Below are positions 6,421-55,707 of a stretch of DNA of 64,000 nucleotides, one piece after another. Under the pieces are notes generated by a model that ran no database searches, was not told where the DNA came from, and saw only the letters and a list, made by a program, of their open reading frames with translations. Made by a program: the position numbers and the translations under genes. Source of the DNA: Zygnema circumcarinatum SAG 698-1b (lineage: Eukaryota; Plantae; Zygnematophyceae); contig CM074810.1 in the NCBI GenBank assembly GCA_037447605.1, positions 1,212,880-1,276,879 of the forward strand. The letters are read 5' to 3'. Numbering within the stretch: the first letter of the stretch is position 1; each line of letters starts with the position of its first letter.

Positions 6421-9257
6421 TCATCTTTGTAGCACAACAGAGTTGACCAATCCTGCAGCCTCTATCGTCTCGCTCGGGTCGGTGAGCGGCTTTGGTGGGA
6501 AACCCATACTCTGCAGCTGGTAGGTGCTGTTGCTGCTTGGACGGGAAGATTCAATGAATGCTCGTATGTCACCCACTGTATGGTCAAGATTGAAGCGAGC
6601 AACCATCCGACTTCCATCCGCTAAACGGAGTTGCACTGAAGTCGAAGGTTTCGTGTCATCCACTACAAGTCCTGCAATTTGCAATACGTGATCAGCTTAT
6701 GACGACAGACAAAATTCAGAACAGCATGATAAGCTGAATTCAAAAGTTCATCTGAGAGAAACAAGGACTCACTTCCAGCATATGCTGACCTAGATTAGGA
6801 AACCACAGCCAGTTATTGCTGAAAGGAGAAAGCATTCCCGACATTATGTTAAGGTGCTGCATATTTTTGGGATAACCTACAGACCATCCATCACCTGCAT
6901 CTCGCAATCTGCTAACTCAACGTGTGCCACTCCTTCCAATAAGTCGAATCACTCGGTTTTTTCTAATGCAAATACCAATGAATCCAGTACCTTAAACAAA
7001 CACTGCCTTAAAGATCGCACCTTGACGAGTTGAAGCATTGCTCGTTGATAGAGTGGGAGAAGGCTCAGTTGCCACTGCAAAACCACCTAAAGTTCGACCA
7101 ACACCAGAAAAGGCCACGTATCGTGGCTCAGGAGGAGGCTGCAGAGGAGACAAACACACATCTCACGGTTAACACAAGGCACAAGCATAGCTGCCATGGC
7201 CCTGGAAGGAAGGAAGGAATGAAGCATTAACCAAAAGGACACTGGCTAAGTACATTTTCCTGCTGCTTCAGAGGCCAGACAGCGCCAAAGACCGTGGGCC
7301 AAAGACCATCCTGCAGAGCCTTTAAGGATGTAGCATAGGCTCCAAATGACATCAGGGGTTGAATCCTACCGTCCAATCTTCGTCCTTGCGGACGAGATTC
7401 ACCTCTACCGGGGAAACACGATCAGGCGGAGCCAATTCTCGTGGACATTCTCCGCGATTGATGCTCTGCAGACAGAGGACGGTGCGTTGCGCTACATTTG
7501 TTAGGAAGTAATGCAAAATCGAGGTCAGCAGCAATACTATACTCCTCTTTCGTCAGTGGAAATTGCAGCTTTCCTCCAACAGAAGCCAACAGCGTAGAAG
7601 CAGAGGTAGCAAGTTTGAAAGCATTACGCACAGTTAAGAAGCTAGAATTGGCAGGGTCCTCCAATCTGCGTAAGGGCCCATCGTCAACAGTAAACCCATT
7701 CCGCCAGAATGTGATAGTATAGCGATTCGATTTTGGCCGTTCTAATGCCACCGGCTGGGCACCTTCTACACTGTCTTCTGGTGAAGCTCCAAGAGTCCGA
7801 GCCCTTCCTGAAAAGGCACCTCCCCTCCGTACCTCGGGCGATTCAAGGTCCTCTGCATCTCCATCTCGTGCTCCAAATTGCCGCGCGCGTTCAAAAATGG
7901 CATCCACATTTGGAGTCCGCCCACCTCGCTTGGGATCTTGCACCATCATGCCACTGCTTTCACAGAATGCCACACCCCAACACATTCAAACGAAGTCCAC
8001 AGAGAGGAAACAAGCAACAGAAAGTCAAGCTTCCATACAAGGCACGGGCTCCTCAAGAGTAGCCCTTCTAAACTCCTGGCTGACGAGAATGAGAAAGATG
8101 GGCTTCTTCCGAGATACGGAAATTCTGATTAACATGCAATTAAGCTGCCGCAACAAACATCAGGAACTCCACTCGTGATGACCACGAAATCCAAACAACA
8201 AATTTGCCACCAGCCCATCCAACCCTTGTTTTGCCAGAAGCTAGAAAAAAAAAAAATGATGCAGCTACACGATCCATCTTGGTGAGAGCGCTAATGGCAT
8301 AAGTGATAGATGTCGACAGTGAGCCATTTTTGCAAACGGATTGGCACCGCCGTTTTTTTAATCAAAATTCAACACAGTTATTCCAGACTGTATTTGCAGT
8401 TTCCGAAGTTTCCCAAACCAATGACTGTTTCCCAAACTGTTGTTGGGAGACTGTTATTGTTGAAAACCGTTGACAACAGAAGAACAAACTGACGCTATGC
8501 AGAGCAATCACAAGCTAGTAAATAAAAAAAATCACAAACAGTAGGCATGATAGTCAGATTGGCAATTTACCGTATTCCAATTTGGCAAGTATCACTAATA
8601 ATAATAATTACGGGAAAACGCCACGTTGCTCAGGATGTTATGCAAACAATAACAAGAGATGCTGATGCATACATGTGTATGCATATATCGGTCTATAGAC
8701 CGATGCATTTAGAAAAAAAGATAAAGTTCTCCTACTAGCGTCTGAATCCACCCTGACGAAACGTGCTCTGAAGAGTGATTTGGTCCCAAGCAGCTCATTT
8801 GTTGTGATTGGGATTGTTGTGATTATAGAACGACTTGTGCCCACCTCTTTTCCCCGCCCGTATAGTACTCGTTAGGCTCTTCATCATCGTCCTCATCATT
8901 GTCCTCCTGCACTTTGTTCAAGTCAGATACTGTCTTGAATCTGCTGCTGGATGCGGCTCTAGAGGCCGCTTGCGAGGACCTTCCCCTCGTTGCAGAGGCT
9001 GCCTGTCCAAAAGTTTGAGATCTTGGCCCATGCTCCTCCTGATTGGAGGGCTGCCCTGAAGATAGTGGCTCCAATTCTTCCCGCTGATGAGTTGCAGCTT
9101 GAAGCCCTAAGTCCGCATGGCCGTCCTGGTCAAAGAAGGAAGATATTGCAGAATCAAGATCCCAATTGGAGCTCTCGAGAAAGAAGGCCGCCTGCTCTGC
9201 CTTCGCACTCGTGATTGAGCAAAAACTCGCAACCATTTCCTGCTTATCTGTGTCCAT
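6421..9257 (-). CDS. Plant UBX-domain protein, p47/Shp1-type CDC48 adaptor (UBA-like, SEP, UBX); exons 9257-8845, 7953-7632, 7465-7370, 7138-7021, 6671-6421
   Basis: UBA-like [18 protein letters not shown]; [16 protein letters not shown] across intron 1; [30 protein letters not shown]; SHP box [10 protein letters not shown]; [27 protein letters not shown]. Splice phases are consistent. Confidence 0.95.
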
Positions 9258-9757: not shown

Positions 9758-9805
9758 GTACGGTCAAGTACGGTCAAGTACGGTCAAGTACGGTCAAGTA
9801 CGGTC
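9758..9805. repeat. Tandem 10-mer (CGGTCAAGTA) x4 plus a partial copy
   Basis: Read directly; each junction creates GTAC. Confidence 0.9.
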
Positions 9806-10348: not shown

Positions 10349-13300
10349 ATGGCGCACGCGCGGTCTCTCTCTCTCGCGGCGGCGTTTTTCCTCCTCTGTG
10401 CCGCCGCCGCCGCCCCGCGCGAAGCCGCCGCTCAGGCCATGGACCCGCGAGACAGTGAGCCGCCGCGGCCCGCCCCCCCGCCCTCTATGGACGGGGAGAG
10501 GCGCCCTGCTCGCGTCGTGGCCTCTGTTTGTGCTTTTTGAAGCGGACCGCGGCCTCAATCTAATCCTGCATCTGCTCGCGCTTGGGTGCAGGGGACGCCC
10601 TTCTCGCTGTCAAAGCGGCAATCAACACCACACAAAATCTCTACGGACTTGATCTCACCTCCTGGACTGTGAGTAACCCCGACTGCCGCAATTGGCACGG
10701 GATCGAGGCGTGCGACGCAACCGGGCGCGTTACTGAGATGTGAGCCACACTTTGAATGAACACCGCTTGTGATGTTGGAGGCTCCGCGGATTCCATAGCT
10801 GCAGAGCTGCAGCTCGAGGCTGCGAGCAGGGTTCTGCGGGTAGAAGTCTCCTCAACAAGCGGCGAAAAAGGGCCGCCCGGAGCAGTCCTTCTACTGCTTG
10901 CGGCCCTTTCTTCTTCTGACACTCTCACTGCTAACTTGCCTTTGCTAACCTGCCTTGTGCAGACGTTTAGGGTCTTACTTATGTGGAGGAACCATTTCAC
11001 CTGCCATCGGTAACCTGACAAAGTTGACACGTTTGTGAGTGGCTCCATTTCAGAAGGATGCATTCCATGCATGTTTGTGAGTACAAAGTGATACGGAGGG
11101 CTCAAATGTTGGGACGTGCTAAATTAGTAGAAGCACTGAACCACTCAGCGGCCTCGCTACCTGTAATGCGTGTTCGCACCATGGCTCGGCTGCACATGCA
11201 CAAGCTTCAAGTTTACGATGACGCGTCACGTTTACGTGGTGTATTGCAGCTACTTGACTCCGTTCCTTGCAGCATTCTTTCCACATGAGTTTTCCATTTT
11301 GCTGGAAATATCGGCCAGACTCGTTGAGCCTTTTTTCTTTATTTTTGGCAGATACTTGCATTTGAATTCCCTAACGGGGTCTATCCCGGATTCTATCGGC
11401 AACCTTGCGAATCTGCTAACATTGTAAGTATTTTTCCCCATAAATCTGAAATGAAAGTCATAGGAATGCCAGTGATAGAAATGCTAGTCGTGGCAGCATG
11501 TTTATTCAGTGCCCTATTTTTTTTTTTTTTTTGGCAGAGACTTGTCTTCTAATTCCCTAACGGGGTCTATCCCGGATTCTATCGGCAACCTTGCGAATCT
11601 GCAATACTTGTAAGTAATTTTCCCCATAAATCTGAAATGAAAGTGATAGAAATGACAGACAGAGGAATGCCAGTGATAGAAATGCTAGTCGTGGTAACAT
11701 GTTTATTCAGTTCCTATTTTTCTTTATTTTTGTGCAGATCCTTGTCTTATAATTCCCTAACGGGGTCTATCCCGGATTCTATCGGCAACCTTATGAATCT
11801 GCAATACTTGTAATTAATCTTCCCCATAAATCTGAAATGAAAGTGATAGAAATGACAGACAAGGGAATACCAGTGATAGAAATGCTAGTCGTTGCAGCAT
11901 GTTTATTCATTTCATATTTTTTCTATCTTGGGCAGGTACTTGGATTTCAATTCCCTAACAGGGTCTATCCCGGCTTCTATCGGCAACCTTGCGAGTCTGA
12001 ACGAATTGTAAGTATTTTTCCCCATAAATCTGAAATGAAAGTGATAGAAATGACAGACAGGGGAATGCCAGTGATAGAAATGCTAGTCGAGGCAGCATGC
12101 TTATTTAGTGTCTATTTTTTTTATTTTGGCAGATACTTGGGTCCCAATTCCCTAACTGGGTCGATTCCGGCTTCTATCGGCAACCTTTCGAATCTGGAAA
12201 AATTGTAAGTATTTTTCCCCATAAATTTTAACATGAAAGTGATAGGAATGCCAAATAGAGGAATGCCCGCGATAGAAATGCTAGTCGTGGCAGCATGCTT
12301 ATTTAGTACCTATTTTTTTTTTTTTTGGCAGAGACTTGGGTCAGAATCCCCCAACAGGGTTTATCCCGGCATCTATCGGCAACCTTGCGAGTCTGAACGA
12401 ATTGTAAGTATTTTTCCCCATAAATCTGAAATGACAGTGATAGAAAAATGCCATACAGAGGAATGTCAGTAATAAAAATGCTAGTCGTGGCAGCACGCAT
12501 ATTTAATGCCCCCCCTTTTTTTTTTTGGCAGACGCTTAGGTTCTAATTCCCTAACAGGGTCTATCCCGGCTTCTGTTGGCAACCTTTCGAATTTGGAAAT
12601 ATTGTACGTATTTTACCCCATAAATCTGAAATGAAAGTGATAGAAATGACAGACAAAGAATTGTCAGTGATATAAATGCTAGTCGTGGCAGCATGATTAT
12701 TCAGTTTCATTTTGTTTTTTTGGCAAAGTCTTGGCTTCCAATGCCCTAACAGGGTCCATCCCGGATTCTATTGGCAACCTTGCGAATCTTTATTATATGT
12801 AAGTATTTTTCCCTTAAATCTGAAGTGAAAGTGATAGAAATGCCAAACAAAGAAATGACAGTGATAGATTTTTTTTGTCGTGGCAGCATGTTTATTCAGT
12901 GCCTTTTTTTCTATTTTTGGCAGGGGGTTGGGTTCTAATTCCCTAACGGGGTCAATTCCGGATTCTATCGGCAACCTTACGAATCTGCAATACTTGTAAG
13001 TATTTTTCCCCATAAATCTGAATTGCCAGAGATAGAAATGTCAGACAGAGGAATGCCAGTGAGATAAATGCTAGTCGTGGCAGCATGTTTATTCAGTGCC
13101 TTTTTTTTTTTTTTGGCAGGTACTTGGATGATAATTCCCTAACGGGATCGATCCCGGATTCTTTCGGCAACCTTGCGAACCTGCTAGAATTGTAAGTATT
13201 TCTCCCCTTTAATCTTAAATGAAGGTGATAAAAATGCCAAACAGAGAAATAACAGTGATAGATTTTTTTTTTTTCTGGCAGCATGTTTATTCAGTGCCTT

Positions 13301-15066
13301 TTTTTTTATTTTTGGCAAAGCATTGTCTTCTAATTCCCTAAAGGGGTCTATCCCGGATTTTATCGGCAACTTTGCGAATTTGGAAAGATTGTAAGTATTT
13401 AAGAAGCTGAAAGCCCCTCGCCCCGTATCAGATCGCACTGACGTGTCGAGAATCTTCCAACCAATCACGTCGCAGTGTTAGATACGCTTCAGATTCTTCC
13501 CTGCGCCCCTCCTGATCCGATCCCTCCGCTGTCGTACTGCACTCTCGCACTTCCTCCCTGCCGGTGCCAAGGGGTACAGGAGAGATGGAGGAGAGAGAAA
13601 GAGAGAGAAGTGAGGGAGAGAGAGAGAGTGAGGGAGAGAGGGAAAGGGAGGGAGGGAGAGACAGAGAGAGCACCTCCGGGCAGAGCGCATTCACACGGAT
13701 CCCATGGTCGGTTGGCACGTGACAACTCCGAACTTTGGTTTGCATTTGAGCAATCATTCAACCGAGTTTCAATTTTTTTGTTTTTTCTTGTCGCAAAACA
13801 TCCGCCGAGCTAGTGAGGCTTTTTATGAATATCGGTGGATGCTAATTCACATGCAAACGTTTTTGTAATTCTGAGGGGCATCATCCCGAACACTATTGAG
13901 AACCTCGTGACTTTGTATAATTTGTATGCCATTTTTTCTGAAATTATAAGTGCAATGACCTATTGCATCTTGCAAAAGCAGCAACTTTCGATGTTGTGTA
14001 TCCATGATTGAGTGGTAAATCTTTGCCGCGTAGTTGTTTTCACTTTTGGTGTTTATATACGAGTAAAATTTTATTCTCGCACTGCTATTTTGTGAGACTG
14101 CGTTTTGAGAATTCGACTATAAAACGTGGAGTTGAATACCTGATTTATTCATGTTCAGTCCAGAACCAACCTTATCCTTTTTGTTTAATTTTTTTTCGTT
14201 TTGTATGTCTGTAGGTTTTTGAGCAGCAACAAACTGGAGGGGAGAGTGTCCGGCTTCATCTCTAAACTCACCAAACTGTACTACTTGTAAGCACCGCTGC
14301 ATCGATAACGTTATATTTTCAGTTTCAATTTTTTCTCTCGGCCGAGCATTTGTATCGCTCAAACTATTGCATTTATTTCGCGCTTGCATGAGTTTTAAGT
14401 TTATCTCATATTTTTGGTCACTTCTGTCACGGCGCTGACTTTTTTGACGCACAATACTGCGCACTTTTGCATGCGAGAGATTAGACTTCGTTGTTGAGAG
14501 TTTAGGATTTAGAATTTACGGATTAGGGTTACGGTTTAGGCTTAAAGATTGTAAGTCTTAAAGTTTGAGGGGTTCAGGGGGAAGGGATAAGTCTCCGTTC
14601 AGAGACTTTGCAGACAGCACAAGCGAATTTTTTCAGTGGCTGTGACACAAGGAAGACTTGAACGGGGTCTGTTGGAAAGTTCCTCTCTCTCTCTCTCCCC
14701 CTCTCTAACGCGCCACCTTTAATGTCATCAGGTGGTTAGACAACAACAAGTTGACTGGCTCCATAAGTCTTGCGAGCTATAGCCCTTATGACGGGTACTT
14801 TTGGTTTCAAAACAACTACTTCTCCGGGCCAATCGACATTACATATAATGGGCAACCTTATTGCGTCTTCAACTTTACCAATAACTGCATTTATCGCAAT
14901 ACCACAGGATGTGGCGCAGCTCAATATCAGAGACCTCAACAAGAGTGCGCGGCCTTCTGCCAAAGCGGTGCTCCCAAGGGAGCGTGCGGGGGCCGCGGCA
15001 CGTGCGGGTATGACACGGCCATGTGTACATGCGACAAGGGATATGCGCTGGCATCGAACACGTGTG
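10349..15066 (+). CDS. 5' part of secreted multidomain gene: signal peptide, LRRNT cap, single-LRR 72-nt exons, LRR C-cap and EGF-like domain; exons 10349-10454, 10592-10739, 10963-11034, cassette array, 14215-14286, 14732-15066
   Basis: MAHARSLSLAAAFFLLCAAAAA signal; DALLAVKAAI..SWTVSNPDCRNWHGIEACDATGRVTEI (plant LRRNT); repeats of xLxxNSLTGSIPxSIGNLxxLxxL; WLDNNKLTGSI..NNYFSG..CGGRGTC..CTCDKGY. The locus continues into an N gap. Confidence 0.88.
11352..13390 (+). repeat. Array of 11 tandem exon+intron cassettes (~197-bp period), each with one 72-nt LRR exon starting at 11352, 11538, 11738, 11936, 12133, 12332, 12532, 12727, 12924, 13120, 13319
   Basis: Introns are highly similar (gtaagtatttttccccataaatctgaaatgaaagtgatagaaatg..ctagtcgtggcagcatgtttattcag..polyT..ggcag). 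All exons are 72 nt and phase 2-2. Units 8 and 11 have CAA in place of the CAG acceptor. Confidence 0.95.
13857..13923 (+). pseudogene. Degenerate LRR pseudo-exon
   Basis: Reads LRGIIPNTIENLVTLYN then tt|gtatgc donor, but is only ~67 nt, is frameshifted at its 5' end and is preceded by CAA. Confidence 0.55.
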
Positions 15067-15549
15067 GTGATTTGCAACCTGCTGCTTGTAGATACTTGCA
15101 AGAAAGGAAAAGTAAAGGGTGGCATAGGTTGTGGAAACTATTGCATTGCTATCAATATGATTCGGCCAATAGAAGAGGTTCAATTCTCGAACTTCTAGAA
15201 GCATATCGCAAGTATTACTTGGTGAACTCTGCAATCTCATTCAGTAAATGGCGCAGAGTTTGTAAGGATGTATCGAGAGTGCCGCTCCGACATCATGTTT
15301 GAAAATTTTGATAATCTTCTTGACCCATTCAAATCGCGTGCAAGCTACAACATATGTCGGCTCTATTTGCAGTAGCTAGATATCCTGCGAATTTGACCTT
15401 GCTGCTTTTCAAAGGAAAAATTGCGTAGCTCGAGAAGTGACAAAGGGATCTGATTTGCTGTGGAGATGTATAGCCTGAGAGGCACATAGATGATAAAATG
15501 TCACGTCAAAAGACTTGAAGTAAGTTTACTTTCTTCGGAATGGTTTCGA

Positions 15550-15649
15550 NNNNNNNNNNNNNNNNNNNNNNNNNNNNNNNNNNNNNNNNNNNNNNNNNNN
15601 NNNNNNNNNNNNNNNNNNNNNNNNNNNNNNNNNNNNNNNNNNNNNNNNN
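15550..15649. other. Assembly gap (100 N, true size unknown)
   Basis: N run; it lies where the papain N-terminal half with the catalytic Cys is expected. Confidence 1.
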
Positions 15650-15752
15650 GTTTGGGATTGATACATACATACCTTGATTTCTGAAGTGGTATTCTGGAAA
15701 GGTCAATGCCTTTGACTAAATGTTGCATCCGTCATGTTCCGTCAAAATGCAG

Positions 15753-18700
15753 GAAGTTAGGGTACGCATTCTGTCATACGAGAGTGTCCAGGTGAACGGC
15801 TGGCTTGGCCTTTTGCTTGCTCTCCAGCAACAGCCAGCAGTGGTTGCTATCGAAGCAAGTTCTGACAGTTTTTTGAACTACAACCCCGCAATGGTAAGCG
15901 TAGTTAGTGACTGATTCTGATCTCTAAACACATAAACAACTCGAAAGAAAAGGGAAAAAAAAACTTGCAAGTTCAACTTGCAAACTGTTTTCAATGGGAT
16001 GTGTCATTTTCATTGAGTATGTGACAGAAGATAACACATTCAAGCTTATACACAAAACAGAAAAATCTCAGAAGATCATCATAAAACTCAAAAAACTTTA
16101 TTTTATAAATGGGGGGGGGCTGAATACAAAATCACTTCAATCTTTCTCCTCTCTTCTCTCTTTCTTGTCTTTCTTTTTTTCTGGTCTTCAACTACTGCGC
16201 AGCGCTTCTTTTCTACTCACTGTCTATGCATCTAGAACATTCCTTTCTGAATCCTGTTTCTTGAAGCTCATGTCTCTTCTCGTCCTCTTCGCACATTCCT
16301 GAAAGTTCTCACACGTGCAATCTTACGCATCCACGTGCGATCCTACATATCCGTACAATTTCTGTACACTTGTCGTACATCATTCCGTGCAATGTCCGTA
16401 CAACTCGCAGCATCATCTATCACAGAGTAAAGGCATAGTAGCTATTTTGATGTACAACTGCATTTGTTTTTTTTTTTTTGCTCAGCAATGCTGTATGTTC
16501 TTCCTGCTGCAGGGAGTGTTCGATGACGAGGAGTGCTTTTCCGACGGTGTGGATCACGCCGTGGTCGTTGTGGGATACGATTTGACGGCTGCGATCCCAT
16601 ATTGGATCATCCGCAATTCCTGGGGACCCAACTGGGGGGACAAAGGGTACATGTACATGAAGGTGACGGGGGGATACGGAATTTGCGGCATCAATGTTAG
16701 ACCGCCAATTATACCAATCGTTCAACTTCCTGGTAGGAATGAATGCCAAGTGTCTGGTGATGCTTTGAATCAGGCACTGCTGGCTTTTATCGTTTCCTTG
16801 GGTGATTGAAGCTGAAGATGCCTTTATAATCTTTATCAGATTATAGAAGCTAGCAGTCTGCTGAGAATCTCTGTTCAGCTGGATGCATTGCATGCATGTC
16901 GGGATGGCTGGGGAAGGCCTTCAGTCTTTCTTGAAATTGACTTTAAGTCGTGAGAGAATCTAACTGTAGAAAGTCCCGTCGCCCAAAATATTTCTTTCGC
17001 TGCAATTAGCCTTCAACGTTGTAAACATTATACAAACATGCCGCGAACTGGAGTTTCAAACCCAAATATCATTTTGGCAAAAGTGCTCCGTCCATGCAAA
17101 AACTAGCATCGTGGCAAGAAGGGTTTTGAACGTTTCAGAATCGAGTTTCTGTGGCCTAACCATTTGGAAGAAAGCAGTACCACTTGACCACCACAGCAAG
17201 CAGTTTATCTCTTCTACTTAGTTTCCTTTCTTCATGAGCTGTGCAGCAAGTGATCCTTGCAACCTCTTCAGCTTCACCCGCCGAATTCTCCGGTTGGCGT
17301 ACGGACCGGGGCAGATGAACCCCTGCGGGAACGGAGTCTGCTTTCCTTCACTTTCCGGCACAACAAATGTTTGCGAATGTGCTGACAACTTTGTTAACGT
17401 TACGAACTCAGACGGAACGCAGACGTGTGCACCCGGTAAAAAAAAAAAAAGAAAAAAAAAAAAATGTCTACGAAATGATTTGTCCATGAAATGCCTACGC
17501 TTATGCTTTTATTCAATATTCTACATGTAGACTACGCACGTATCGACTCTGCTGGAAAAATAATTTACACTGCATCTGTCCTCGTGCAGCTGAATCTCCA
17601 AATCAAGGGCTACAGACCACAGTGTTCCAAGTTGAAGAGTGACCTTTCTTTCTTTGCTTCGTGATAGCTTTACATTTATTATTTCTGATCTCCTCTTGTG
17701 ATTCCGCTTCACGCCCTAATGCCTTACGCCTGATTGCCACGTGGCAGCGTCTCCATGCACGTTCACATCACGGAATCCGTGCGGCGTGGGCACATGCGTG
17801 GACAACGCAGCGCTCAACGGAACGTACATGTGCATTTGCCCTCTCGGCTATTCGCCGGACTCGTCCGAAGAGGCTCTCACCTGCCTCCCCGGTCCGCACC
17901 CGGCAGACTCGCAAACCCGGTTCAAACGTATATAGATATAGGCATACAGGCATTGATACGATAAGATATGTAAGGTATAGGCATTGTTTGCCTATATCTT
18001 CAAACATTAAATAACTGAAATTTTCGAAGGTTTACGAATACAATTTTGAAAATTTTGTTAATTGAATGTGTTTAAAAATTGGTTGACTTCATCGTCGTCG
18101 TTCTTTAAATTGCAGCTGTCCTTTTAGGTGGACGTCTACTGAGCTATACTGTCCCAGTGAATACCAGTTTACCCTGCACAAGTCTGTACGGAACATATGG
18201 CATACCCAAGGCAGTGCACAAAACAAGGTCAGTTCAAGGACTTGCTGCTAACGCATCGTGCTGAAAAGATATGGAAAGGAAAGCACGTTTCTCTTTCGAT
18301 TCAAGCAACTTTTGTGTGCAAAATATTTTGGTCTTGTTGGAAATCTCTCACCACGAAGCGCCATGTGATTCCTTGCGTGACATAAAACCAACTCTCTGCA
18401 CCCCTCTCCCTCTCCCTCCATTTCAGGGTCTGAACTGCAGCAGTCCCCTTCCGGGAGGCACTGTTGTGAATGTGACGAGTGCGAGCAACTGCTCCGTCAC
18501 GTATGCACTGGAGGAGGTCAGTGCTAATTCGAATGCTAATAATGATGGAAACAGTCAGCAACAACACGTAGATTTTCAAAAACGACGAGCAGGACCCGTA
18601 GACTGCCTACCTTACAGCCTCATAAGAAAGCATGGATCTTCATATACTCGTGTTCTGTATAATGATTATATCGTAGTACCGAGATTACTGCTGTTTGAAG

Positions 18701-19980
18701 CGGCGCTCTAAAAGTAGACATTTTCTTACTGGTGAGCGCAGGGAGACACGTGTACCTCCGTGGAGCAATTGTTTAACATCACAGCCCTGTCCGGCCCCAC
18801 CTCTCCGAATCCGGACTTGGACTGCTCACAGCTGCAGCCATATCAGCAGGCAACACTCTTTCTTTCGCTCTCCTTAGGGCAAATTAAGCCTTAAAGTCGA
18901 AAATTATGTTAGCGGTCTTGTTCTATGCTTCGTTGAGAAGAAGCACATTCAATTGCATATCCAGTCCACAGCCCCATAGTGCAGAATCTGACTGCTCCCA
19001 TGGCGTACGGTCCTGTGCAGGTCTGCATTCGAAGGGGAGAGCTCGCCTACCCGGGGCCGTGCAGTCGGCTGTACAGCGTGCAGCTGAACGACACGTGTGT
19101 TTCCATAATAAGCGGACTCATGGAGGGTGACGCCATCAAGTTTTTCACGCTAAACCCGGGTTTGTACTGCGGCCAGTTGCAGCTGTCGTTCAATGCCAAC
19201 AGCGATCTCAGTCGACAGGTAATGATCCCCCGTCCTTTTTTGCGTCTGCATGGCCGGGTTGAAATTAGGAGCTTGTGAGGCTAGTCATTGGCACAACCTT
19301 AAGCTTGCAGCACTCTCGAGGAGAGGAGAGAATGTCTATCAAACTTCACAATCACGTTAGAGTGTCCACTGCTTTCAGGATGTTGATTCAGATTTGACTG
19401 ATGATGTTGATGGTTTTGGACTAAGAGTAGTACAATGGGCATTTCGCCAGGCTAAGCCAAAGCGTTGCGAAGCAAGGTAGACTTTTCCTTTTGTGAAGTG
19501 ATCCTTCCAAGCTCCCGCCCGTTCACCCTCCTCGATCGTTTTTTTGTTTCGTTTTCCTTGTCGCGTATAAGCAGTTTTTTCTTGGGTCCAAAGGACTCTT
19601 ATCCAAGTCCTCGTCTAAAGGTTGCCAACGTCTGTTCTGATTTTGCTGCATTCAAATATCGGATGCTTTTCATGCCACTGGAAATCTCCGTTTCCTCTTC
19701 TTTTTCAAGATTCATCTTTCTTCATCCGACTGCTTCTTGCTTTCTGCAGGTGTGCCTTGAAGCGGCGGATTTGGGCCTGGGAAAGGGCTGCAAAGGGAGA
19801 CCTCACAAGCTGCAGGCGGGTGACTCCTGCATCAGTTTGAAGGCGTGCTTTTCAAAGAAGGAGACGTTCAAGAAGTTTAACAACGGCACGTCCTGCACTA
19901 AGAAGCTTCTGGAGACCCTCCGGGCGAAGGACACGACCGCGGCCAAAGTCTGCGTCCCGACAAGCAGCAAGTGCACGTAG
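15753..19980 (+). CDS. 3' part: papain-family (C1A) protease C-terminal half, 2 EGF-like domains, 4 Cys-flanked LysM domains; exons 15753-15893, 16513-16732, 17247-17435, 17748-17891, 18116-18227, 18427-18516, 18742-18849, 19021-19218, 19750-19980
   Basis: QQPAVVAIEASSDSFLNY; catalytic His and Asn in VDHAVVVVGY..YWIIRNSWGPNWGDKGY; EGF NPCGNGVC..CEC and NPCGVGTC..CICPLGY; LysM-like YALEEGDTC..NPDLDC..QQVCI, YSVQLNDTC..FFTLNPGLYC, HKLQAGDSC..VCVP. No transmembrane segment seen. Apparent frameshift in LysM1. Confidence 0.85.
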
Positions 19981-21568
19981 GCATGCGACTTTTGTCGCAT
20001 GCGAGAGCGGCCCATGGGGCGCGTGACGCCTCTCCTCCCTCGGCAGTTTCAGAGGAGGAGGCGGCGGTCAAACTTAGTATGGGTATGGCTCTACTGTAGT
20101 GCGCGTACCTGCACATGCATGGCATGATGAGGGAGTGGACGCACCATGGCAGTGGCATGCATAGGGGATGCATAAAGACACGCTTGGGGGATGCATGGAT
20201 GGATGGATTGTTCGTCGTCGGCTTTCGTTTCTCGTTGGCATTGCGTCGTCATGCAGACAGTCGATCCCGGCGTTTGGTTGGACAGCAGACCGTGATTAAA
20301 CGCGTTTCAAACATTGAGATATGTGACAAGCTGAAAATTGTGCTAATGAATGTTATGAGCTGCCTTTGGTCAGAAGTTGGAACATTTTCATCTTCATGTT
20401 GGTTTCTGGCACTGCGGGTCGATCTGCTTAACGGAGAATGGGCCGGGCCGGATTAGGGCGAGCCTGGGAAAATGAGCTCTTTTCATCAAAGGATTTTGCC
20501 ACGTGGACCATTCCTGCATTGACACGTGGCAGTGAGTCGGCCAGGCTCGAACCGAGCACTGGCGGGCTTCAAATAGGGCACTGCCGGGCGGGAGTCTTTG
20601 TCATATCAGCCCAGAGACGTGCCGTACAGGGTACGGATCGCAATTCCCGACAACAATGGGAGGGGCGCCACGTGCCGCCTTCGAGGCGCTTTGAAAAATA
20701 TAAAAAAAAATCTGACCAGTTTCCATGCGAACAGAGATTTCTCCTACTGAAGTCAGTTTGATCTGGTTACAGATAACATTTTGTACGGCCGTGGAAAGCC
20801 ACGGACGTACAAAATGTCGATCTTGGCCCGCCGGCGCGCCACGTCGGATAGCACAAAACTGGTTAGCCACGTGCCGGTTTCCAATTTGCTGATAGCTCCT
20901 CGCCCGGCGGTCACGTCACGCCACGCCACGGCGGGTCGTTGGCTGCGACTGCAAGCCGGCACCGCGCGCGGCCCCGAGATTCGTGACGGGTCTTCAGAAG
21001 CGACGTGGAGGCGCTCGATTGGAGAATGCCCGTGTTCCAGTCAAACGGGGTCGTTTGGGCTAGTCGAGGTCGCCACGTCAGCAACCTCACACGCCCTGAA
21101 AGATCCCGGACCCGCGGATCGCTGCAGATCTGTTCCATATTTTTCAGCCATTCAATCGGTCGTATCACTGCCACCCTTCCCACGAGGAAGATCTAGAATC
21201 GGATCTCAGCAAGATATCCATGGCTCTATGACTCAGCAGTAGATTTTTATATCCGGCCATAGAATCTACAAATCACGTATTCCAGGCGACCAGCAACCAA
21301 TAGCCGTCAGTACTGGAAGGCTGTTTTTACCTCACCATATCTGAATAGAATCTCAGGAGGATCTATAAGGGCTCCAGCCGGGTCCGAGAATCTCTGACTA
21401 GATTTGGGGTCCGCGACGAGCCCATCCCGTCCCCGCCCGCGTGACGTCCCGAGTTGCTCCGCGACAACCGACAAAGCGCGCGCGCGCGCGCGACCGTGTG
21501 CCTTTGTGCGGCGGTCCGCCGCTCGTCCTCGCGCCTCGCTCTCGCCTGCCGCTCGCTCTATCCCTGCC

Positions 21569-29495: not shown

Positions 29496-29948
29496 TAGCT
29501 TCCAGTGCCTGCCTGCATACGCTCCCGCCTGCCTGCCTCCCGCCCTCCGCGCACGCCTGTCAACCCTTGCAGGAGTAACTTTTTTTTCTTCAAGCAGCCG
29601 TTGCAGGACTGTGAGCGCGAACATCTGCCGCAGCGACTCTGTCATATTGCCTTCTTTTTATGTCTGAGCCCATTCCCCCCACACTTCTGTTGGGAAAGTA
29701 TTGTCCCACAGCTCGGAAGAGGCGTAAACTGACAGGCGTAGGTCACGCAGGCGGGGATGGGATAGGCCCGTCTCGGACGCCAAATCTAGGCAGAGATTGT
29801 CGGACTCGGTTCGAGCCTGTCAGATACTCTTGATATTCTATTTAGATATATTAAGGTCACTAGAGACTTGCATTACTGACGGCTACTGGTTGCTGGTCGC
29901 CTGGATCCGTGATTTTTAAAAACCCTGAAAACCAATCCATTTTTCGCG

Positions 29949-32012
29949 ATGGCTGGTTTAGTGAACATTGGAGAGGACAACCAAAACGATGGCTTCTATC
30001 GTTACAAGATGCCCAAGCTGCAGACAAAGATTGAGGGTAGGGGAAATGGCATCAAAACAAACGTTGTGAACATGGTGGATGTCGCGAAGGCGTTAGCGCG
30101 CCCCCCGTCATATACTACGAAATTCTTCGGATGTGTCCTTGGAGCCCAGTCCAAGTTTGACGAGAAAACTGGAACATCCACTGTCAACGGTGCACATGAT
30201 ACATCAAAGCTTGTGCAGCTTCTGGAAGCGTTTATCAAAAAATATGTGCAGTGTTATGGTTGCGGGAACCCAGAGACGGAGATTGTTATCACCAAGACTC
30301 AGATGATAACGCTGAAATGTGCGGCATGCGGTTTTTTGTCGGATGTCGACATGCGGGATAAGCTGACGACCTTCATTCTCAATAATCCGCCGGAACAGAA
30401 GAAAGCGAAGGGTGCGAAGCTGCGGAGAGCAGAGAAGGAACGATTGAAGGCTGGAGAGACTGCAGACGAGGAAGCAAAGTCGTCAAAGAAGCCGAGCAAG
30501 ACAAAGGGGGAGGAGAGTGCAAAGAAGCCGCCAAGGAGGAAGGACGATAAAGAGAAGGCTCCATCACCGGATGCCAGTCAGAAAGATGACGACGAGGTGG
30601 CGGACGATGATGACGTCGAATGGCAGACTGACACATCAGCCGCTGCAGCGGAGCAGCGCAGGTTGGAGCAGCTGTCAGCGGCGACGAGCGAGATGGTTAT
30701 GCTGCATGTTGATGAGCACCAGAATGGCAGTGCGAAGAACAAGTCTGGTAGGAAGGGAGGTGATGATGATGAGCCTGCTTCTCCTCCTGCGTCTCTCACG
30801 AGGGGAAGTGCAAGGAGTTCTGTTGAGGATCAGCAGGAAGACGAGGAAGACGAAGACGAAGAAGAGGAGGAAGAGGAGCTGAGTGAGCTTGAAAAGTTGG
30901 TATTTGAATTGAAAGACTATGCAAAAACGCACAACTTGGCAGAAATCGCTGCATGTGTGCAAAGCAAAGGGAAGGCATCACAGATCCTAGTTGCTGCCCT
31001 ATTTTTAGCTCTCTTTGACGGCGTTGGGAGGGGACTTTCTAAAGAGGTTGACAAGAAGAAAACGCTGTTGAAGAAAGTTTTGCCTGATGAAGATGCGCAG
31101 CTGCGGTTTCTTGAAGCGCTAGAATTGTATTGTGGAGTGACAAAGCCTGACGCCATCAAGGAGACTGCACTGGTTTTGAAGGTAAGTTGTTGTGACATTG
31201 ATTAGATCAGTAGGATAGCAGTGCTGTTGATGAGAGGCATGTTTGCTACTGAACAACCGTCTTGAAGAGATTAATAGGTTGCACAACTATCGATGTAGCC
31301 GACGGCTGTTGTGGGTTTGCTGCTCACTGGATTGGTCATCGTCGATTAAGCTGACGATTGTGAGAGGACTACGCTGGGGTGACACTTCTCAAGTGCTCAC
31401 TGTAACATACTGTCAATGCATGTCAACAGGCTTGGACTGTTGTTGCATTCTATTCTCCCGTGTTTACTGTCCTAACTGCTTGTCTAGAATCTTAGGTTTC
31501 CAGCTTCCCATGTCTGGCTGAAAGGTGCTCGATTTTGTAGGCGATTTTGAATAATCATATTATTTATAAGATCTTTGTACCATTTCTTCTAATGAGGTTG
31601 CGTCCTTTCCCTCATCATTCTGGAATCTTTGCTGATTTCGATATTATATTTTACTTGGCCTTGTTATTCCAATGGCTACAGAAAAAAAAAGGCTTGTTGA
31701 TTCCTTTTTTTTCCTGAATTCACACCTCTGCCCCTTGAGGTTATGCAAGAGTGATCATTCCAATGCCACATCTCCTTGTTTTCAAGTTGTCCGTGAACAG
31801 TTATTCAAACCCGTTCTGATATTGCGCTGATGTCTCAGGTGCTTTATGACAATGATATTGTGGAGGAAGATCAGATATTCACATGGTTTTCTCGCAAGAG
31901 TGGAATCGCGGAGCTTGGAATCGATGCAAAGGCAGTGGCGTCAGTGCGCAAGGAGGCCGCTCCTCTCGTGAAGTGGTTGCAAGAGGCTGAGGCTGAGTCA
32001 GAGGAGGAGTGA
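29949..32012 (+). CDS. eIF5: Eukaryotic translation initiation factor 5; exons 29949-31181, 31839-32012
   Basis: FYRYKMPKLQTKIEGRGNGIKTNVVN, zinc ribbon YVQCYGCGNPET..KCAACG, W2 domain ending LYDNDIVEEDQIFTW..VKWLQEAEAESEEE. Confidence 0.98.
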
Positions 32013-39108: not shown

Positions 39109-42100
39109 ATGGCGGGCGCCGCGGGCGTGGAGCAGGAAGCAGCTATGGAGGGCAAGCAGGAGGAGGCCGTCACAGAGGGCGTGCAGCAAGATGCAGTCTC
39201 GGGGTATGCAAAGGAAGAGGTAGCCATGGGCGGAGACAAGCAGGAGACAGCCATGGAGGGCGTGCAGCAAGATGCTGTTGCGGAGGGCGCAAAGGAAGAG
39301 GCAGCCCTGGACGGAGTCGAGCAGGAGACAGCCATGGAAGGCGTGCAGCAAGATGCTGTTTCGGAGGGCGCAAAGGAAGAGGCAGCCATGGACGGATTCA
39401 AGCAGGAGACAGCCATGGAGGGCGTGCAGCAAGATGCTGTTTCGGAGGGCGCAAAGGAAGAGGCAGCCATGGACGGATTCAAGCAGGAGACAGCCATGGA
39501 GGGCGTGCAGCAAGATGCTGTTTCGGAGGGCGCAAAGGAAGAGGCAGCCATGGACGGAGTCAATCAGGAGACAGCTATTGAGGGGTTGCAGCAAGATGAT
39601 GTTTCGGATGACGTAAAGGAAGAGGCAGCCATGGACGGATTCAAGCAGGAGGCAGCCATGGAGGTCGTTCAGCAAGATGCAGTTTCGCAGGGCGCAAACG
39701 AAGAGACAGCCATGGACGGAGTCAAGCAAGACACAGTCATGGAGAGCTCGCAGCAAAATGTTGTCCTGGTCCGCGCTTTGCAGGAGGTCGCCACTTTGCT
39801 ACCCGAGGTTCGTATGGAGGGAGCGGAACGGACCTCTTTCATCGCCTCTCCTTCAGTCGTTCTCGCTGCCTCTCTCGGCGACTCTGCTGCTGGTCTGGTT
39901 GAGCCGCATCCCGCCCTTGAGAGTCACGAGGGTGACGGGATTTCCACGAGGGCGGAGGAAATAAGCTCTCGTGTTGCGCTGGAGCTGCGGGGAGGGGCGG
40001 ATGATGAGAAAAAGGTAGTCGAGGAATTGGAACAAGAATCAAAATTTTCGGCCCCTCCAGCCATGGAAAAGAGAGGCGCAGAGGGGAAGGAGGGAGTAAA
40101 TCCTCTCGTGCATTTCTCGCTAAAGGAGCTTGAGGTATCGGTCAATGAAAAGGAAAGGGTGAAGGAGGAACAAGGTTCTTTGCCCTTTCTAAACGCGGTG
40201 GAGGACAAAGTAAAGGGCCGTATTCCTGAAGAAAATCCCCTCTTGGAGAATTCTGAGGATCTCAGTGACGCAAAAATTGAGGCGTCGACTGGTGGTAGCA
40301 TGGTACAGGGAAAGAAGAAAGACGAGGAGGACGTTTGCTTTATCTGTTACGACGGGGGTGACCTAGTCGTCTGCGACAGGAGGTGAGGCTCCACAGAATG
40401 CATAGGAAGCTTTTTTTTCTTTCAGTGCCGTCTTAGCTATGATTTTTAGCGTACATCGTTTTCAATGAAGTACTTGGGGCTTGTTTTTAACTTTTCTTAT
40501 GTTTTCTTGAATAGCAAACAAACCTCGTTTGGGATTGTTTTTTTGGAACTGGAATCGTAAGAATTGAGTAAAGAGTTTATTTGCGGTTCCTTTGAAGGGA
40601 CTCTAATTTGTTTTAAGCTTGTGAGGCTAACGATCAAAGTCAGTGATCATTACCCTTGGTCACTGCTTATTCTCAGTTGTTGGTTGGTCCGTCGATTAAA
40701 TCACTTCCTTTTGCCGTTCCAGTAGTATGCTTGCAACTTGAAGTGCAAGAAAATGTGACCTTGCTCATGGGTTAGATTTGTGCCAGCTGCTTTATTGAGG
40801 GTTTCAAGACACTGGAATGTGTAGAAACAAAACAAAACAAGTTTGAGCCAACTTAAGAACACTATTGAAAGTATCTTGCACTCTTTTTTCCTTCGTTGAT
40901 TTGCCGCAGGTCGTGCCCGAAGTCTTATCACCTAGAATGCTTAGACAGCCCGCCAGATTTATTTGTCAGCGGTGGGAATTGGCACTGCGGTTAGTTTTTC
41001 TATGCTCTATCCCTTTCTAACATCGGTTTTGGCCAACTCGCATGTCAACTTTTTTACTTGAGCAATTTTACAGAATTTTTTTCCTTTTTTATTTGCAGCT
41101 CTGCTGCTTTGGGTATTCGAGTCTAGCTTAGCATGTTATGTATGCTGCTGCAGTTGAGGCTGGGTTCATTCGCCTTGTCAATAATTTTAACGATAGAGAG
41201 GAGGTTTTCACTAGTCGTTTATAGGTAATTCGGTTAGTAAGCCTCCAAGAGCCTTTCAGATAGTCATCGTAAATCTATATCCTTAATAAAAAACTTTACT
41301 ATTTGTGCATGGATTAATCATTGCAGAGGTAACTAGAAAACACAAAAACAAACATTTCTGTAACATCCATCTGCTTGTGTTTGCTGCATTTTTGGTGGCG
41401 CGAAGATAGATGCTCCTCTCCTTACAGAGATGTTTGTGTTTGTGTTTTCTATTAAGGACAATTTTGTGTTTACTCGATGGTTTTTGAACTTTTTGAAAAG
41501 TCCTTGAGAACAGTAGCATTCTGAAGGCATTGTTCGAAGGCTTTTTTTGACAGTTGTTGTTGCAACAGACTGGCATTGTTGCAGGACATGCAAGAAAGCA
41601 GCGATCATCCAGTGCCAGACTTGCTTGTGGGCGTACTGCCAAGTTCATTACAACGAGGAAGGAGGAGATTGGTTTCGCTTTGACCGTCGAAAGGCCCTTT
41701 GCGACGATTGTTTTCCTCTTGTCAAAATCCTTGAGAACTGTGAAAGCTTTGGGCCTGATGGGGTAAGATGCTGCCTATTCCTTTCTTTGTTGCCATTTCT
41801 TGTAAACAGGTTGACCACAGAAACAAGAGAGTGGCTTTGGTTGCTGTGTTTAGTGAATCAAAGCATGGCTTTTTTAGATTCTTGACATGGGTCTACAATT
41901 TGTTTATACTTTGTTCATTTTATTTGTTCGTAAGTATTTAATTTGTGTAAGTTGGTGTTGCTTTTTCTGTGTTTGTGGGTCTCTCTAATTTTCGTCGCTG
42001 TCATCCTGCTGAGCTTTGCAGAAGAAGATTGATTTCGACGATCCTGATACACACGAGAACTACTTTAGAGAGTATTACATAACTTACCATCAAAAGAAAT

Positions 42101-53871: not shown

Positions 53872-54816
53872 GAGGGGGAGGGGAAGAGGGGAAGAGGGGA
53901 AGAGGGGAAGAGGGGAAGAGGGGAAGAGGGGAAGAGAGGGGACGGGAGGGGACGGGAGGGGCCGGGAGGGGCCGGGAGGGGACGGGAGGGGACGGGAGGG
54001 GACGAGAGGGAGGGGACGAGAGGGGACGCGAGGGGACGGGAGGGGACGAGAGGGGACGAGAGGGGACGGGAGGGGACGAGAGGGGACGGGAGGGGACGGG
54101 AGGGGACGGGAGGGGACGGAAGGGGAGAGGGGACGAGAGGGGAGAGGGAACGCGAGGGGACGGGAGGGGACGAGAGAGGGGACGAGAGGGGACGGGAGGG
54201 GACGAGAGGGGACGAGAGGGGACGGGAGGGGACGAGAGGGGACGAGAGGGGACGAGAGGGGACGAGAGGGGACGGGAGGGGACGAGAGGGGACGAGAGGG
54301 GACGGACGGGAGAGGGGAGGGAGGGGACGGGAGGGGACGAGAGGGGACGAGAGGGGACGAGAGGGGACGAGAGGGGACGAGAGGGGACGAGAGGGGACGA
54401 GAGGGGACGAGAGGGGACGAGAGGGGACGAGAGGGGACGGGAGGGGACGAGAGGGGACGGGAGGGGACGGGAGGGGACGGGAGGGGACGGGAGGGGACGA
54501 GAGGGGACGGGAGGGGACGAGAGGGGACGAGAGGGGACGAGAGGGGACGAGAGGGGACGAGAGGGGACGGGAGGGGACGAGAGGGGACGAGAGGGACAGG
54601 GGACGTCAGGGGACGTGAGGGGACGAGAGGGGCCGGGAGGGGACGGGAGGGGACGAGAGGGGACGAGAGGGGACGGGAGGGGACGGGAGGGGACGAGAGG
54701 GAACGGAAGGGGACGGGAGGGGACGAGAGGGGACGAGAGGGGACGGGAGGGGACGAGAGGGGACGAGAGGGGACGAGAGGGGACGAGGGGGAGGCGGGGA
54801 GGGGGGGAGAGGGGGA
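53872..54816. repeat. G-rich minisatellite: (GAGGGGAA)n followed by about 85 units of GGGACG[A/G]GAG
   Basis: Read directly; almost no T on the + strand. Confidence 0.97.
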
Positions 54817-55707
54817 GCCGCGTCCACATGCATGTGTCGTTCACAGTTCCGACATTTCCCGTTCCATGACAGTGGTCATCACAACCCGCTCACATGCTCG
54901 ACAGTTCCGTTCCGTCGCTGGTCATGCGGTGACCTGGTCGGGACGTGTGAACCTCTACGCGACAAAAGCGCCGCCCTGCCAAGGCCGGGGCCGGGCCTCC
55001 ATGCGCGGGTTCAACGGCGGGTCCGGGATCCACCGGGCCGCGCTTGGCCGACGTGGCGCCTACTTGGCAGCCACGTCCGAGTAGATTCTACTCCAAAAAC
55101 GAGGCGGATCCACAAAACGTTGATTGGAATATCCAATCGCGCGTCGCCACGTAGCTACAAAACAGACCCTCTGCGGTAGAACCATTCACCCTCTGTTTCT
55201 GGTTGAAGGAAATGGACGGTTTTTTTTTTTTTTTGAAGTGGCATTGATCTCACGATGGCGATGATGCCATCACATGTACATGGGCGACATCAGCATCATG
55301 GAGAAGGAACCACGAGGAACAACTGGTCGCAAAGGACCTAAGCACAAAAGTTGCAGTTGCGGGAGCGGTTGATTGTACCTCGGCCCTCGTACAACGGTGT
55401 CGCCGTGGGTGGGAGGATGAACGGGAAACTTAGTACCATGGCGCCATCCAAGAGCAGATGCAATTTTAGCAGACAACATCGTCTTATTGTGTAAAGTATG
55501 TGTGTGAGTGTGTTTAAGACTTTCACATGCATTGGCCAAGTAAGGACCCACACAGAATGAACAGAATTCCAATTCATTTCCAAAAGCAGACTCTTGTTGC
55601 AAAAAAAAAGGGGTGAAAAACCTGCTGCACAACGCGGCCTTGACTACTTATTGACTACTAGTTATAGTCATTCGGTCACAAAAAAAGGGCTCTGAAGAAC
55701 ATTGGAG

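Follow-up and report, generated by a model that had tools for sequence, protein, structure and literature searches.

The gene at positions 10349-19980 of the window analysed here, a 64,000-nucleotide stretch of Zygnema circumcarinatum SAG 698-1b (contig CM074810.1, positions 1,212,880 to 1,276,879 of the forward strand), is a transcribed and probably single-gene copy of an apparently undescribed algal family. The reading that we favour, and consider reasonably probable, is that of a damaged but transcribed member of an expanded family with the layout signal peptide-LRR-EGF-papain (C1A)-EGF-EGF-LysM x4, encoded as one gene and damaged recently. Our gene model comprises 25 exons, all on the forward strand (Table 1). 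The product predicted from these exons is a signal-LRR-EGF-papain-EGF-EGF chain without an intact LysM domain. An earlier, sequence-only reading had described a protein carrying four LysM domains, which is wrong for this copy: the frame ends at a TGA codon (18431-18433) inside LysM1.

Reading frame and identity of the LysM tail

Read evidence was restricted to positions 14150-20050 (5,901 letters), a region that holds the whole tail; the LRR array lies outside it. A stretch of 15 letters in the window is 22 letters long in two types of paralogue transcript, and this copy is thus 7 nucleotides short in the first LysM1 exon. That exon (18116-18227) is entered at phase 1 and left at phase 2, and the exon starting at 18427 requires phase 0. 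An error of the assembly is an unlikely cause, since the short form is found both in a DNA contig that matches the window exactly (X1 record 7, 18174-18424) and at a spliced joint, 18227/18427, in run X17, with 52 letters on its short side. Two points weigh against this account, namely that X1 is possibly the assembly's own source, and that weak donors able to keep the frame are present (a GC after 18210 and a GT after 18213), of which no listed read uses either.

The exons of LysM2 to LysM4 are otherwise open in the ancestral frame, from which the damage would appear to be recent. In X8 record 27, a joint at 19474-19748 links a cryptic exon, with stops in the LysM frame, to the last exon, which would be in line with a tail no longer translated. 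A GC-AG intron follows the LysM2 exon at 18849/18850, and RNA joints occur there. In this copy, therefore, a C1A protease and LysM domains are both part of the layout but are not translated on one chain, the stop at 18431 falling within LysM1. Of the four LysM-like domains read earlier, the exons exist and are LysM-like, and what fails is their being in frame with the protease. The docking on microbial walls that had been proposed for them cannot apply to this copy.

That the tail domains are LysM-like was itself upheld. A profile of six repeats, taken from the window and from the relative L006, matched only two entries in the PDB, the chitinase LysM structures 4PXV (E 2.3e-4) and 5BUM (E 6.1e-4), from fern and horsetail. 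Single exons gave weaker results of the same kind: the LysM2 exon matched only the LysM of 4PXV and 5BUM (E 0.6) and the LysM3 exon only that of 5BUM (E 0.07), and a PDB search with the LysM4 exon alone gave an unrelated weak match and no LysM. The tail repeats did not reach the Pfam cut-off for PF01476, the best member having an E of 0.094. A fold model of a tail repeat showed two helices at a predicted local distance difference test score (pLDDT) of 58, and its top structural matches include LysM proteins, at only Z 2.1 and E 2.7. For the LysM3 exon, the fold predicted from its sequence alone was too poor to use (pLDDT 41), and matches in the ESM Atlas search were unrelated or unnamed. Judged by these comparisons, the tail repeats are divergent LysM-like domains with putative glycan binding.

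The assembly gap and the papain domain

The two halves of the model meet at an assembly gap, and for this copy we consider it highly likely that one gene crosses it, because ungapped relatives join the same LRR-cap-EGF module to a papain domain. These relatives were reached by searches with the cap-EGF exon and with the papain exon. The RNA contig L007 encodes LRRs, cap-EGF and a papain domain 64% identical to that of the window, and L006, which overlaps it, goes on into LysM-like repeats; L006-L008 derive from SRR8128903, SRR8128904 and SRR8128906, a different sample set. In the genomic contigs L005 and L009, the cap-EGF exon is followed by a phase-1 intron, with its donor placed as at 15066, and then by exons bearing Gln and Cys-Trp. 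In L009 (ENA ERZ19053313 scaffold_56531, from a metagenome, with compact introns) these are two exons of 189 and 224 nucleotides. The Cys exon is followed by a phase-0 intron, the same as at 15753, and by an exon matching 15753, and the contig proceeds through His and Asn. The LRR-EGF-papain join is thus seen in three ungapped relatives from other samples, the two genomic ones having the intron phases of the present gene.

Relative to these contigs about 410 coding bases are missing from the window, so that the gap would truly be longer than its nominal 100 letters. By the same comparison, it probably hides the oxyanion Gln and the position of the catalytic Cys. In X8 record 23, which carries the papain exons of this copy, 228 unplaced letters stand upstream of 15749, about the size of the Cys exon of L009 (224 nucleotides). 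Letters also extend towards the gap in X7 record 17 (127) and X1 record 3 (115). The EGF1 and LysM4 exons are each represented by a fragment in a single X7 record (joint 15013-19749, with a side of 35 letters), which is probably from a paralogue.

The papain domain itself is readily recognised. Peptidase_C1 scored 70.9 bits against a Pfam cut-off of 20.7, and His 16555 and Asn 16615 align with those of cathepsin K (E 2e-15), in agreement with the C1A half and intact His/Asn read earlier. The middle exon, 15753-15893, is spliced to 16513 in three RNA-type runs. The catalytic Cys had been noted as not visible, and a motif search as well as tblastn with the relatives' exons likewise found no catalytic-Cys exon in the readable window. 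Gln and Cys-Trp are present in relatives L005 and L009, where about 45 residues lie between the EGF and the mature papain domain and no Pfam match to the I29 propeptide was found. In L009 the papain domain, immediately behind the cap-EGF, is complete, with Gln, Cys, His and Asn all present. Among the differences listed between the papain exons and a paralogue, four of five single-base changes are synonymous, and there is one whole-codon change in addition. Unspliced RNA-type contigs identical to this copy cover 16608-17061 in X7 and X8. The relative represented by L006-L008 is transcribed, has stops in the N-terminal half of its papain domain and is without EGF2, EGF3 and parts of the LysM tail; its stops and losses suggest that copies of the family decay elsewhere as well. 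The sequence-only reading had also stated that no transmembrane segment or kinase is encoded, and there is none in the readable exons of the model, the gap itself being unread.

Several observations weigh against a single gene. For this copy, the gap is not bridged by any of the listed records, and the RNA loose ends, which begin at 15066, are Pro-rich after that point and probably come from paralogues. Relatives also include standalone LRR-cap-EGF genes, some with a Pro-rich tail (L011/L012) and others ending right after the EGF (L010, L013). Two adjacent genes might be imagined instead, of which the left one would encode a secreted wall protein of LRR-EGF or LRR-EGF-Pro-rich type and the right one a papain-EGF-EGF-LysM protein, the gap then concealing a stop, some intergenic DNA and a second start. 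The undefined length of the gap, the standalone genes, and the RNA contigs that leave 15066 for a Pro-rich exon all speak for such a pair, as do contigs far deeper on the EGF exon than on the papain exons and Mesotaenium receptor kinases headed by the same cap-EGF module. We nevertheless regard it as distinctly unlikely, given that exactly these two modules are joined in the three ungapped relatives, with equal intron phases in the two genomic ones. The X8 depth of this copy's contigs, 20.6 at 14925 and 20.5 to 21.6 on the right, is similar on both sides and points the same way, weakly, contig depth being unreliable. Of the one polypeptide claimed earlier, the single gene is accordingly well supported by the ungapped relatives, and the part that did not stand is the LysM domains, which are out of frame with the protease.

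Two further readings accept one gene and differ on its product. The protein first proposed was a complete chain, its papain domain active and all four LysMs translated, that would dock on walls and serve in defence by recognising and cleaving its targets. It would be consistent with the open LysM2-4 exons, with the frame kept in paralogue transcripts and with the alternative phase-0 donors after 18210 and 18213. Those donors, however, would delete the region of the second LysM1 helix and occur in none of the listed reads; canonical splicing stops at 18431, the short exon is present in DNA and in spliced RNA contigs, and in X8 an exon containing stops is spliced in ahead of LysM4. We hold this protein to be very improbable. 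A product that is catalytically dead or altered, serving for binding or as a decoy, or else one of no further consequence from an expressed pseudogene, is given little more weight. Transcripts with a stop several introns upstream of the last exon are candidates for nonsense-mediated decay, and here the stop falls three introns before it. The position of the Cys in the unread gap, the stops in the papain N-terminal half of L006-L008 and the several marks of decay in this copy would suit such a product as well. On the other side, His and Asn are intact, the listed papain-exon differences from a paralogue are mostly synonymous, spliced contigs of this copy occur in X8 and X17, and the Cys is kept in two relatives. 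A recently damaged, transcribed single gene remains the account that we prefer.

The LRR-EGF head and other features of the window

The left half of the gene is one open frame of 508 residues on the forward strand. Its same-strand exons and consistent splice phases bear out the collinear signal peptide, LRRNT, dozen or so LRRs and EGF of the sequence-only reading. There are thirteen 72-nucleotide phase-2 LRR exons, and the last LRR is carried by the cap-EGF exon. An LRRNT_2 cap followed by 24-residue repeats places the head among plant-type extracellular LRR proteins.

Within the LRR array, the cassettes at 12727 and 13319 have CAA in place of the AG acceptor; both losses are the same CAG-to-CAA change. 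Skipping of the cassette at 12727-12798 preserves the frame, and use of the next AG would make an exon of 70 nucleotides. Cassettes in the 11352-13923 array are 72 nucleotides long with phase 2-2, so that skipping is frame-neutral. In the cassette at 12332, Pro occupies two positions that are normally conserved. With acceptors lost, one cassette decayed and a cryptic exon spliced in, this copy is in our judgement probably on its way out, in a family evolving by birth and death.

The LRR had been called variable, and this was supported. Across the 11 tandem LRR exons, concave-face positions have a nonsynonymous proportion (pN) of 0.54 and a synonymous proportion (pS) of 0.24, as against 0.08 and 0.22 at other positions, values based on six codons, which were picked by LRR structure and with knowledge of the alignment, and on pairs that are non-independent. 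The first 30 intron bases of the 11 units differ by 0.175. The pattern is compatible with a binding surface that is diversifying.

In runs X7, X8 and X17, unspliced contigs of RNA type, identical in sequence to this copy, cover 15026-15549. If the intron after the EGF1 exon were retained, translation would stop at about 15302 and give a secreted protein of LRRs and EGF. The read-through adds 78 residues without a recognisable domain and was rejected as a coding extension, an intron-retained short form being possible in view of the unspliced contigs.

Both EGF domains expected after the papain domain were found, one by Pfam and the other by its Cys pattern (Table 1). A candidate exon at 17590-17631, with a good acceptor, was rejected: its exit phase is wrong, and RNA loose ends join 17435 directly to 17748.

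Table 1. Features of the gene at 10349-19980, in window coordinates
Feature	Position	Strand	Evidence or remark
Exon 1, start codon and signal-peptide-like hydrophobic leader	10349..10454	+	Sequence inspection, open frame
LRRNT_2 cap exon	10592..10739	+	Pfam PF08263, E 1.1e-5, above cut-off
First 72-nucleotide LRR exon, phase 2-2	10963..11034	+	Exon inspection
Tandem array of 11 single-LRR 72-nucleotide exons in intron-exon units of about 198 nucleotides	11352..13390	+	Variable concave-face residues
LRR cassette, CAA instead of AG acceptor	12727..12798	+	Outside read coverage
Second LRR cassette with CAA acceptor	13319..13390	+	Outside read coverage
Decayed LRR cassette, shortened, no AG acceptor	13857..13923	+	Approximate boundaries
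72-nucleotide LRR exon	14215..14286	+	Exon inspection
Last LRR, Cys-rich cap and EGF1	14732..15066	+	Phase-1 GT donor just after last EGF Cys
Assembly gap	15550..15649	.	Probably hides at least two exons, about 410 coding nucleotides in relatives
Papain (C1A) middle exon	15753..15893	+	Phase-0 acceptor; no start codon or signal peptide
Papain C-terminal exon, catalytic His 16555 and Asn 16615	16513..16732	+	Pfam E 2e-19; PDB alignment
EGF-like 2	17247..17435	+	Cys pattern only, no Pfam EGF match; joint 16731-17246 in X17
EGF-like 3	17748..17891	+	Pfam EGF E 6.8e-7, passes cut-off; RNA joints
LysM1 first half, 112 nucleotides	18116..18227	+	7 nucleotides shorter than paralogue transcripts; frame shifts near 18214
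LysM1 end and LysM2 start, out of frame	18427..18516	+	Premature TGA 18431-18433
LysM2 core exon, GC donor	18742..18849	+	Downstream of premature stop; PDB matches; RNA joints
LysM3 exon	19021..19218	+	Downstream of premature stop; PDB match
Cryptic exon, 192 nucleotides, AG..GT, stops in LysM frame	19285..19476	+	Spliced to 19750 in X8
LysM4-like exon with ancestral stop codon	19750..19980	+	Most divergent repeat

Upstream of the gene, a perfect 10-nucleotide tandem repeat of 4.8 copies with GTAC cores (9758-9805) stands about 550 nucleotides before the start codon, between the LRR-papain gene and a divergently oriented neighbour. By eye, the neighbouring frame at 7425-7985 (reverse strand) resembles a p47/PUX-type SEP-UBX gene, and that at 29913-31202 (forward strand) resembles eIF5. 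A coding-type tandem repeat of 27/81 nucleotides lies at 39123-39764, and a purine-rich array of about 93 copies of 10 nucleotides at 53885-54817. No second member of the LRR-papain-LysM family was found in the window.

Known systems and the possible role of the family

Fusions of LysM with Peptidase_C1 have been reported for Chlamydomonas and described as lost in angiosperms (PMC2728734), and combinations of C1A with lectins as not retained in vascular plants (PMC6362431). The Chlamydomonas proteins resemble the present family in that a C1A protease is fused to LysM in a green alga. Compared by description only, they differ in that the available text of these sources mentions neither an LRR-EGF head nor EGF spacers, and, for the copy at 10349-19980, in that its LysM tail is out of frame. 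The family is apparently a variant of known papain-LysM fusions with an LRR-EGF head that has apparently not been described. A literature search, with most subscription journals outside its coverage, returned no paper on the LRR-EGF-C1A-EGF-EGF-LysM layout. Protein searches found no full-length annotated member; these were limited by length and by shared words, and have no bearing on the range of the family.

Each module has more familiar counterparts. The C-terminal half of the protease, with its His and Asn, and the Gln and Cys-Trp of the relatives, are those of papain family C1A (PF00112; papain, actinidin, cathepsins K and L), from which the family departs in the lack of an I29 match in relatives and in having LRR-EGF in front and EGF-EGF-LysM behind. 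The best matches of the tail repeats in sequence and fold are the LysMs of fern and horsetail chitinase A (4PXV, 5BUM) and of a Volvox chitinase (5K2L), which belong to the same two-Cys subtype; the repeats differ in being joined to a protease instead of a chitinase, in their divergence and in scoring under the Pfam cut-off for LysM. In Mesotaenium and Closterium the same LRR-cap-EGF ectodomain, 35-49% identical, occurs in LRR-EGF receptor-like kinases and in secreted proteins of LRR-EGF or LRR-EGF-Pro-rich type (ME000014S01168, GJP44996.1, CAI5978296.1), which fits a streptophyte alga of zygnematophycean type. Those proteins, however, end in a transmembrane segment and kinase, a Pro-rich tail or a stop, and the protease end is absent from them.

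A functional parallel may be drawn with the apoplastic guard systems of land plants such as that of tomato, where the extracellular LRR protein Cf-2 and the papain-like protease Rcr3 act together as separate proteins, with a membrane-anchored signalling receptor. In contrast, the family would offer one secreted chain with no signalling part. Intact members would be secreted, and their LysM tail would tether them to polymers of N-acetylglucosamine, i.e. chitin or peptidoglycan. The LRR-EGF head, standing where the I29 inhibitory propeptide normally stands, would, to judge from the relatives, pick protein targets or gate the active site, and the papain domain would cut. The copy at 10349-19980 would yield at most a soluble signal-LRR-EGF-papain-EGF-EGF chain with no glycan anchor.

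The biological setting of such a protein is a matter for tentative ranking. Defence against fungal or bacterial attackers is our leading guess for the family, held somewhat loosely; remodelling connected with the wall, mucilage or mating is possible though doubtful, and non-catalytic binding or another role is a little more doubtful still. A more elaborate proposal is that of a modular extracellular surveillance-protease system, in which the LRR-EGF head takes the place of the inhibitory propeptide and gates papain, single-LRR exon cassettes that are gained, lost or skipped vary the specificity together with a diversifying concave face, and the LysM tail anchors the whole to chitin or peptidoglycan. 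The present copy would then be a soluble, tail-less form rather than a dying one. This we think unlikely.

The main value of the copy at 10349-19980 is that it corrects the earlier reading and points to a family with rapid turnover; an intact, gap-free paralogue would be the better experimental object. If the family works as outlined above, tasks divided in land plants between LRR receptors, papain-like proteases of the apoplast and LysM proteins would, in the probable algal relatives of those plants, be united in one secreted chain. Such a protein would, if this is true, be a papain in which a recognition module has taken the place of the propeptide, a proposition that is directly testable.

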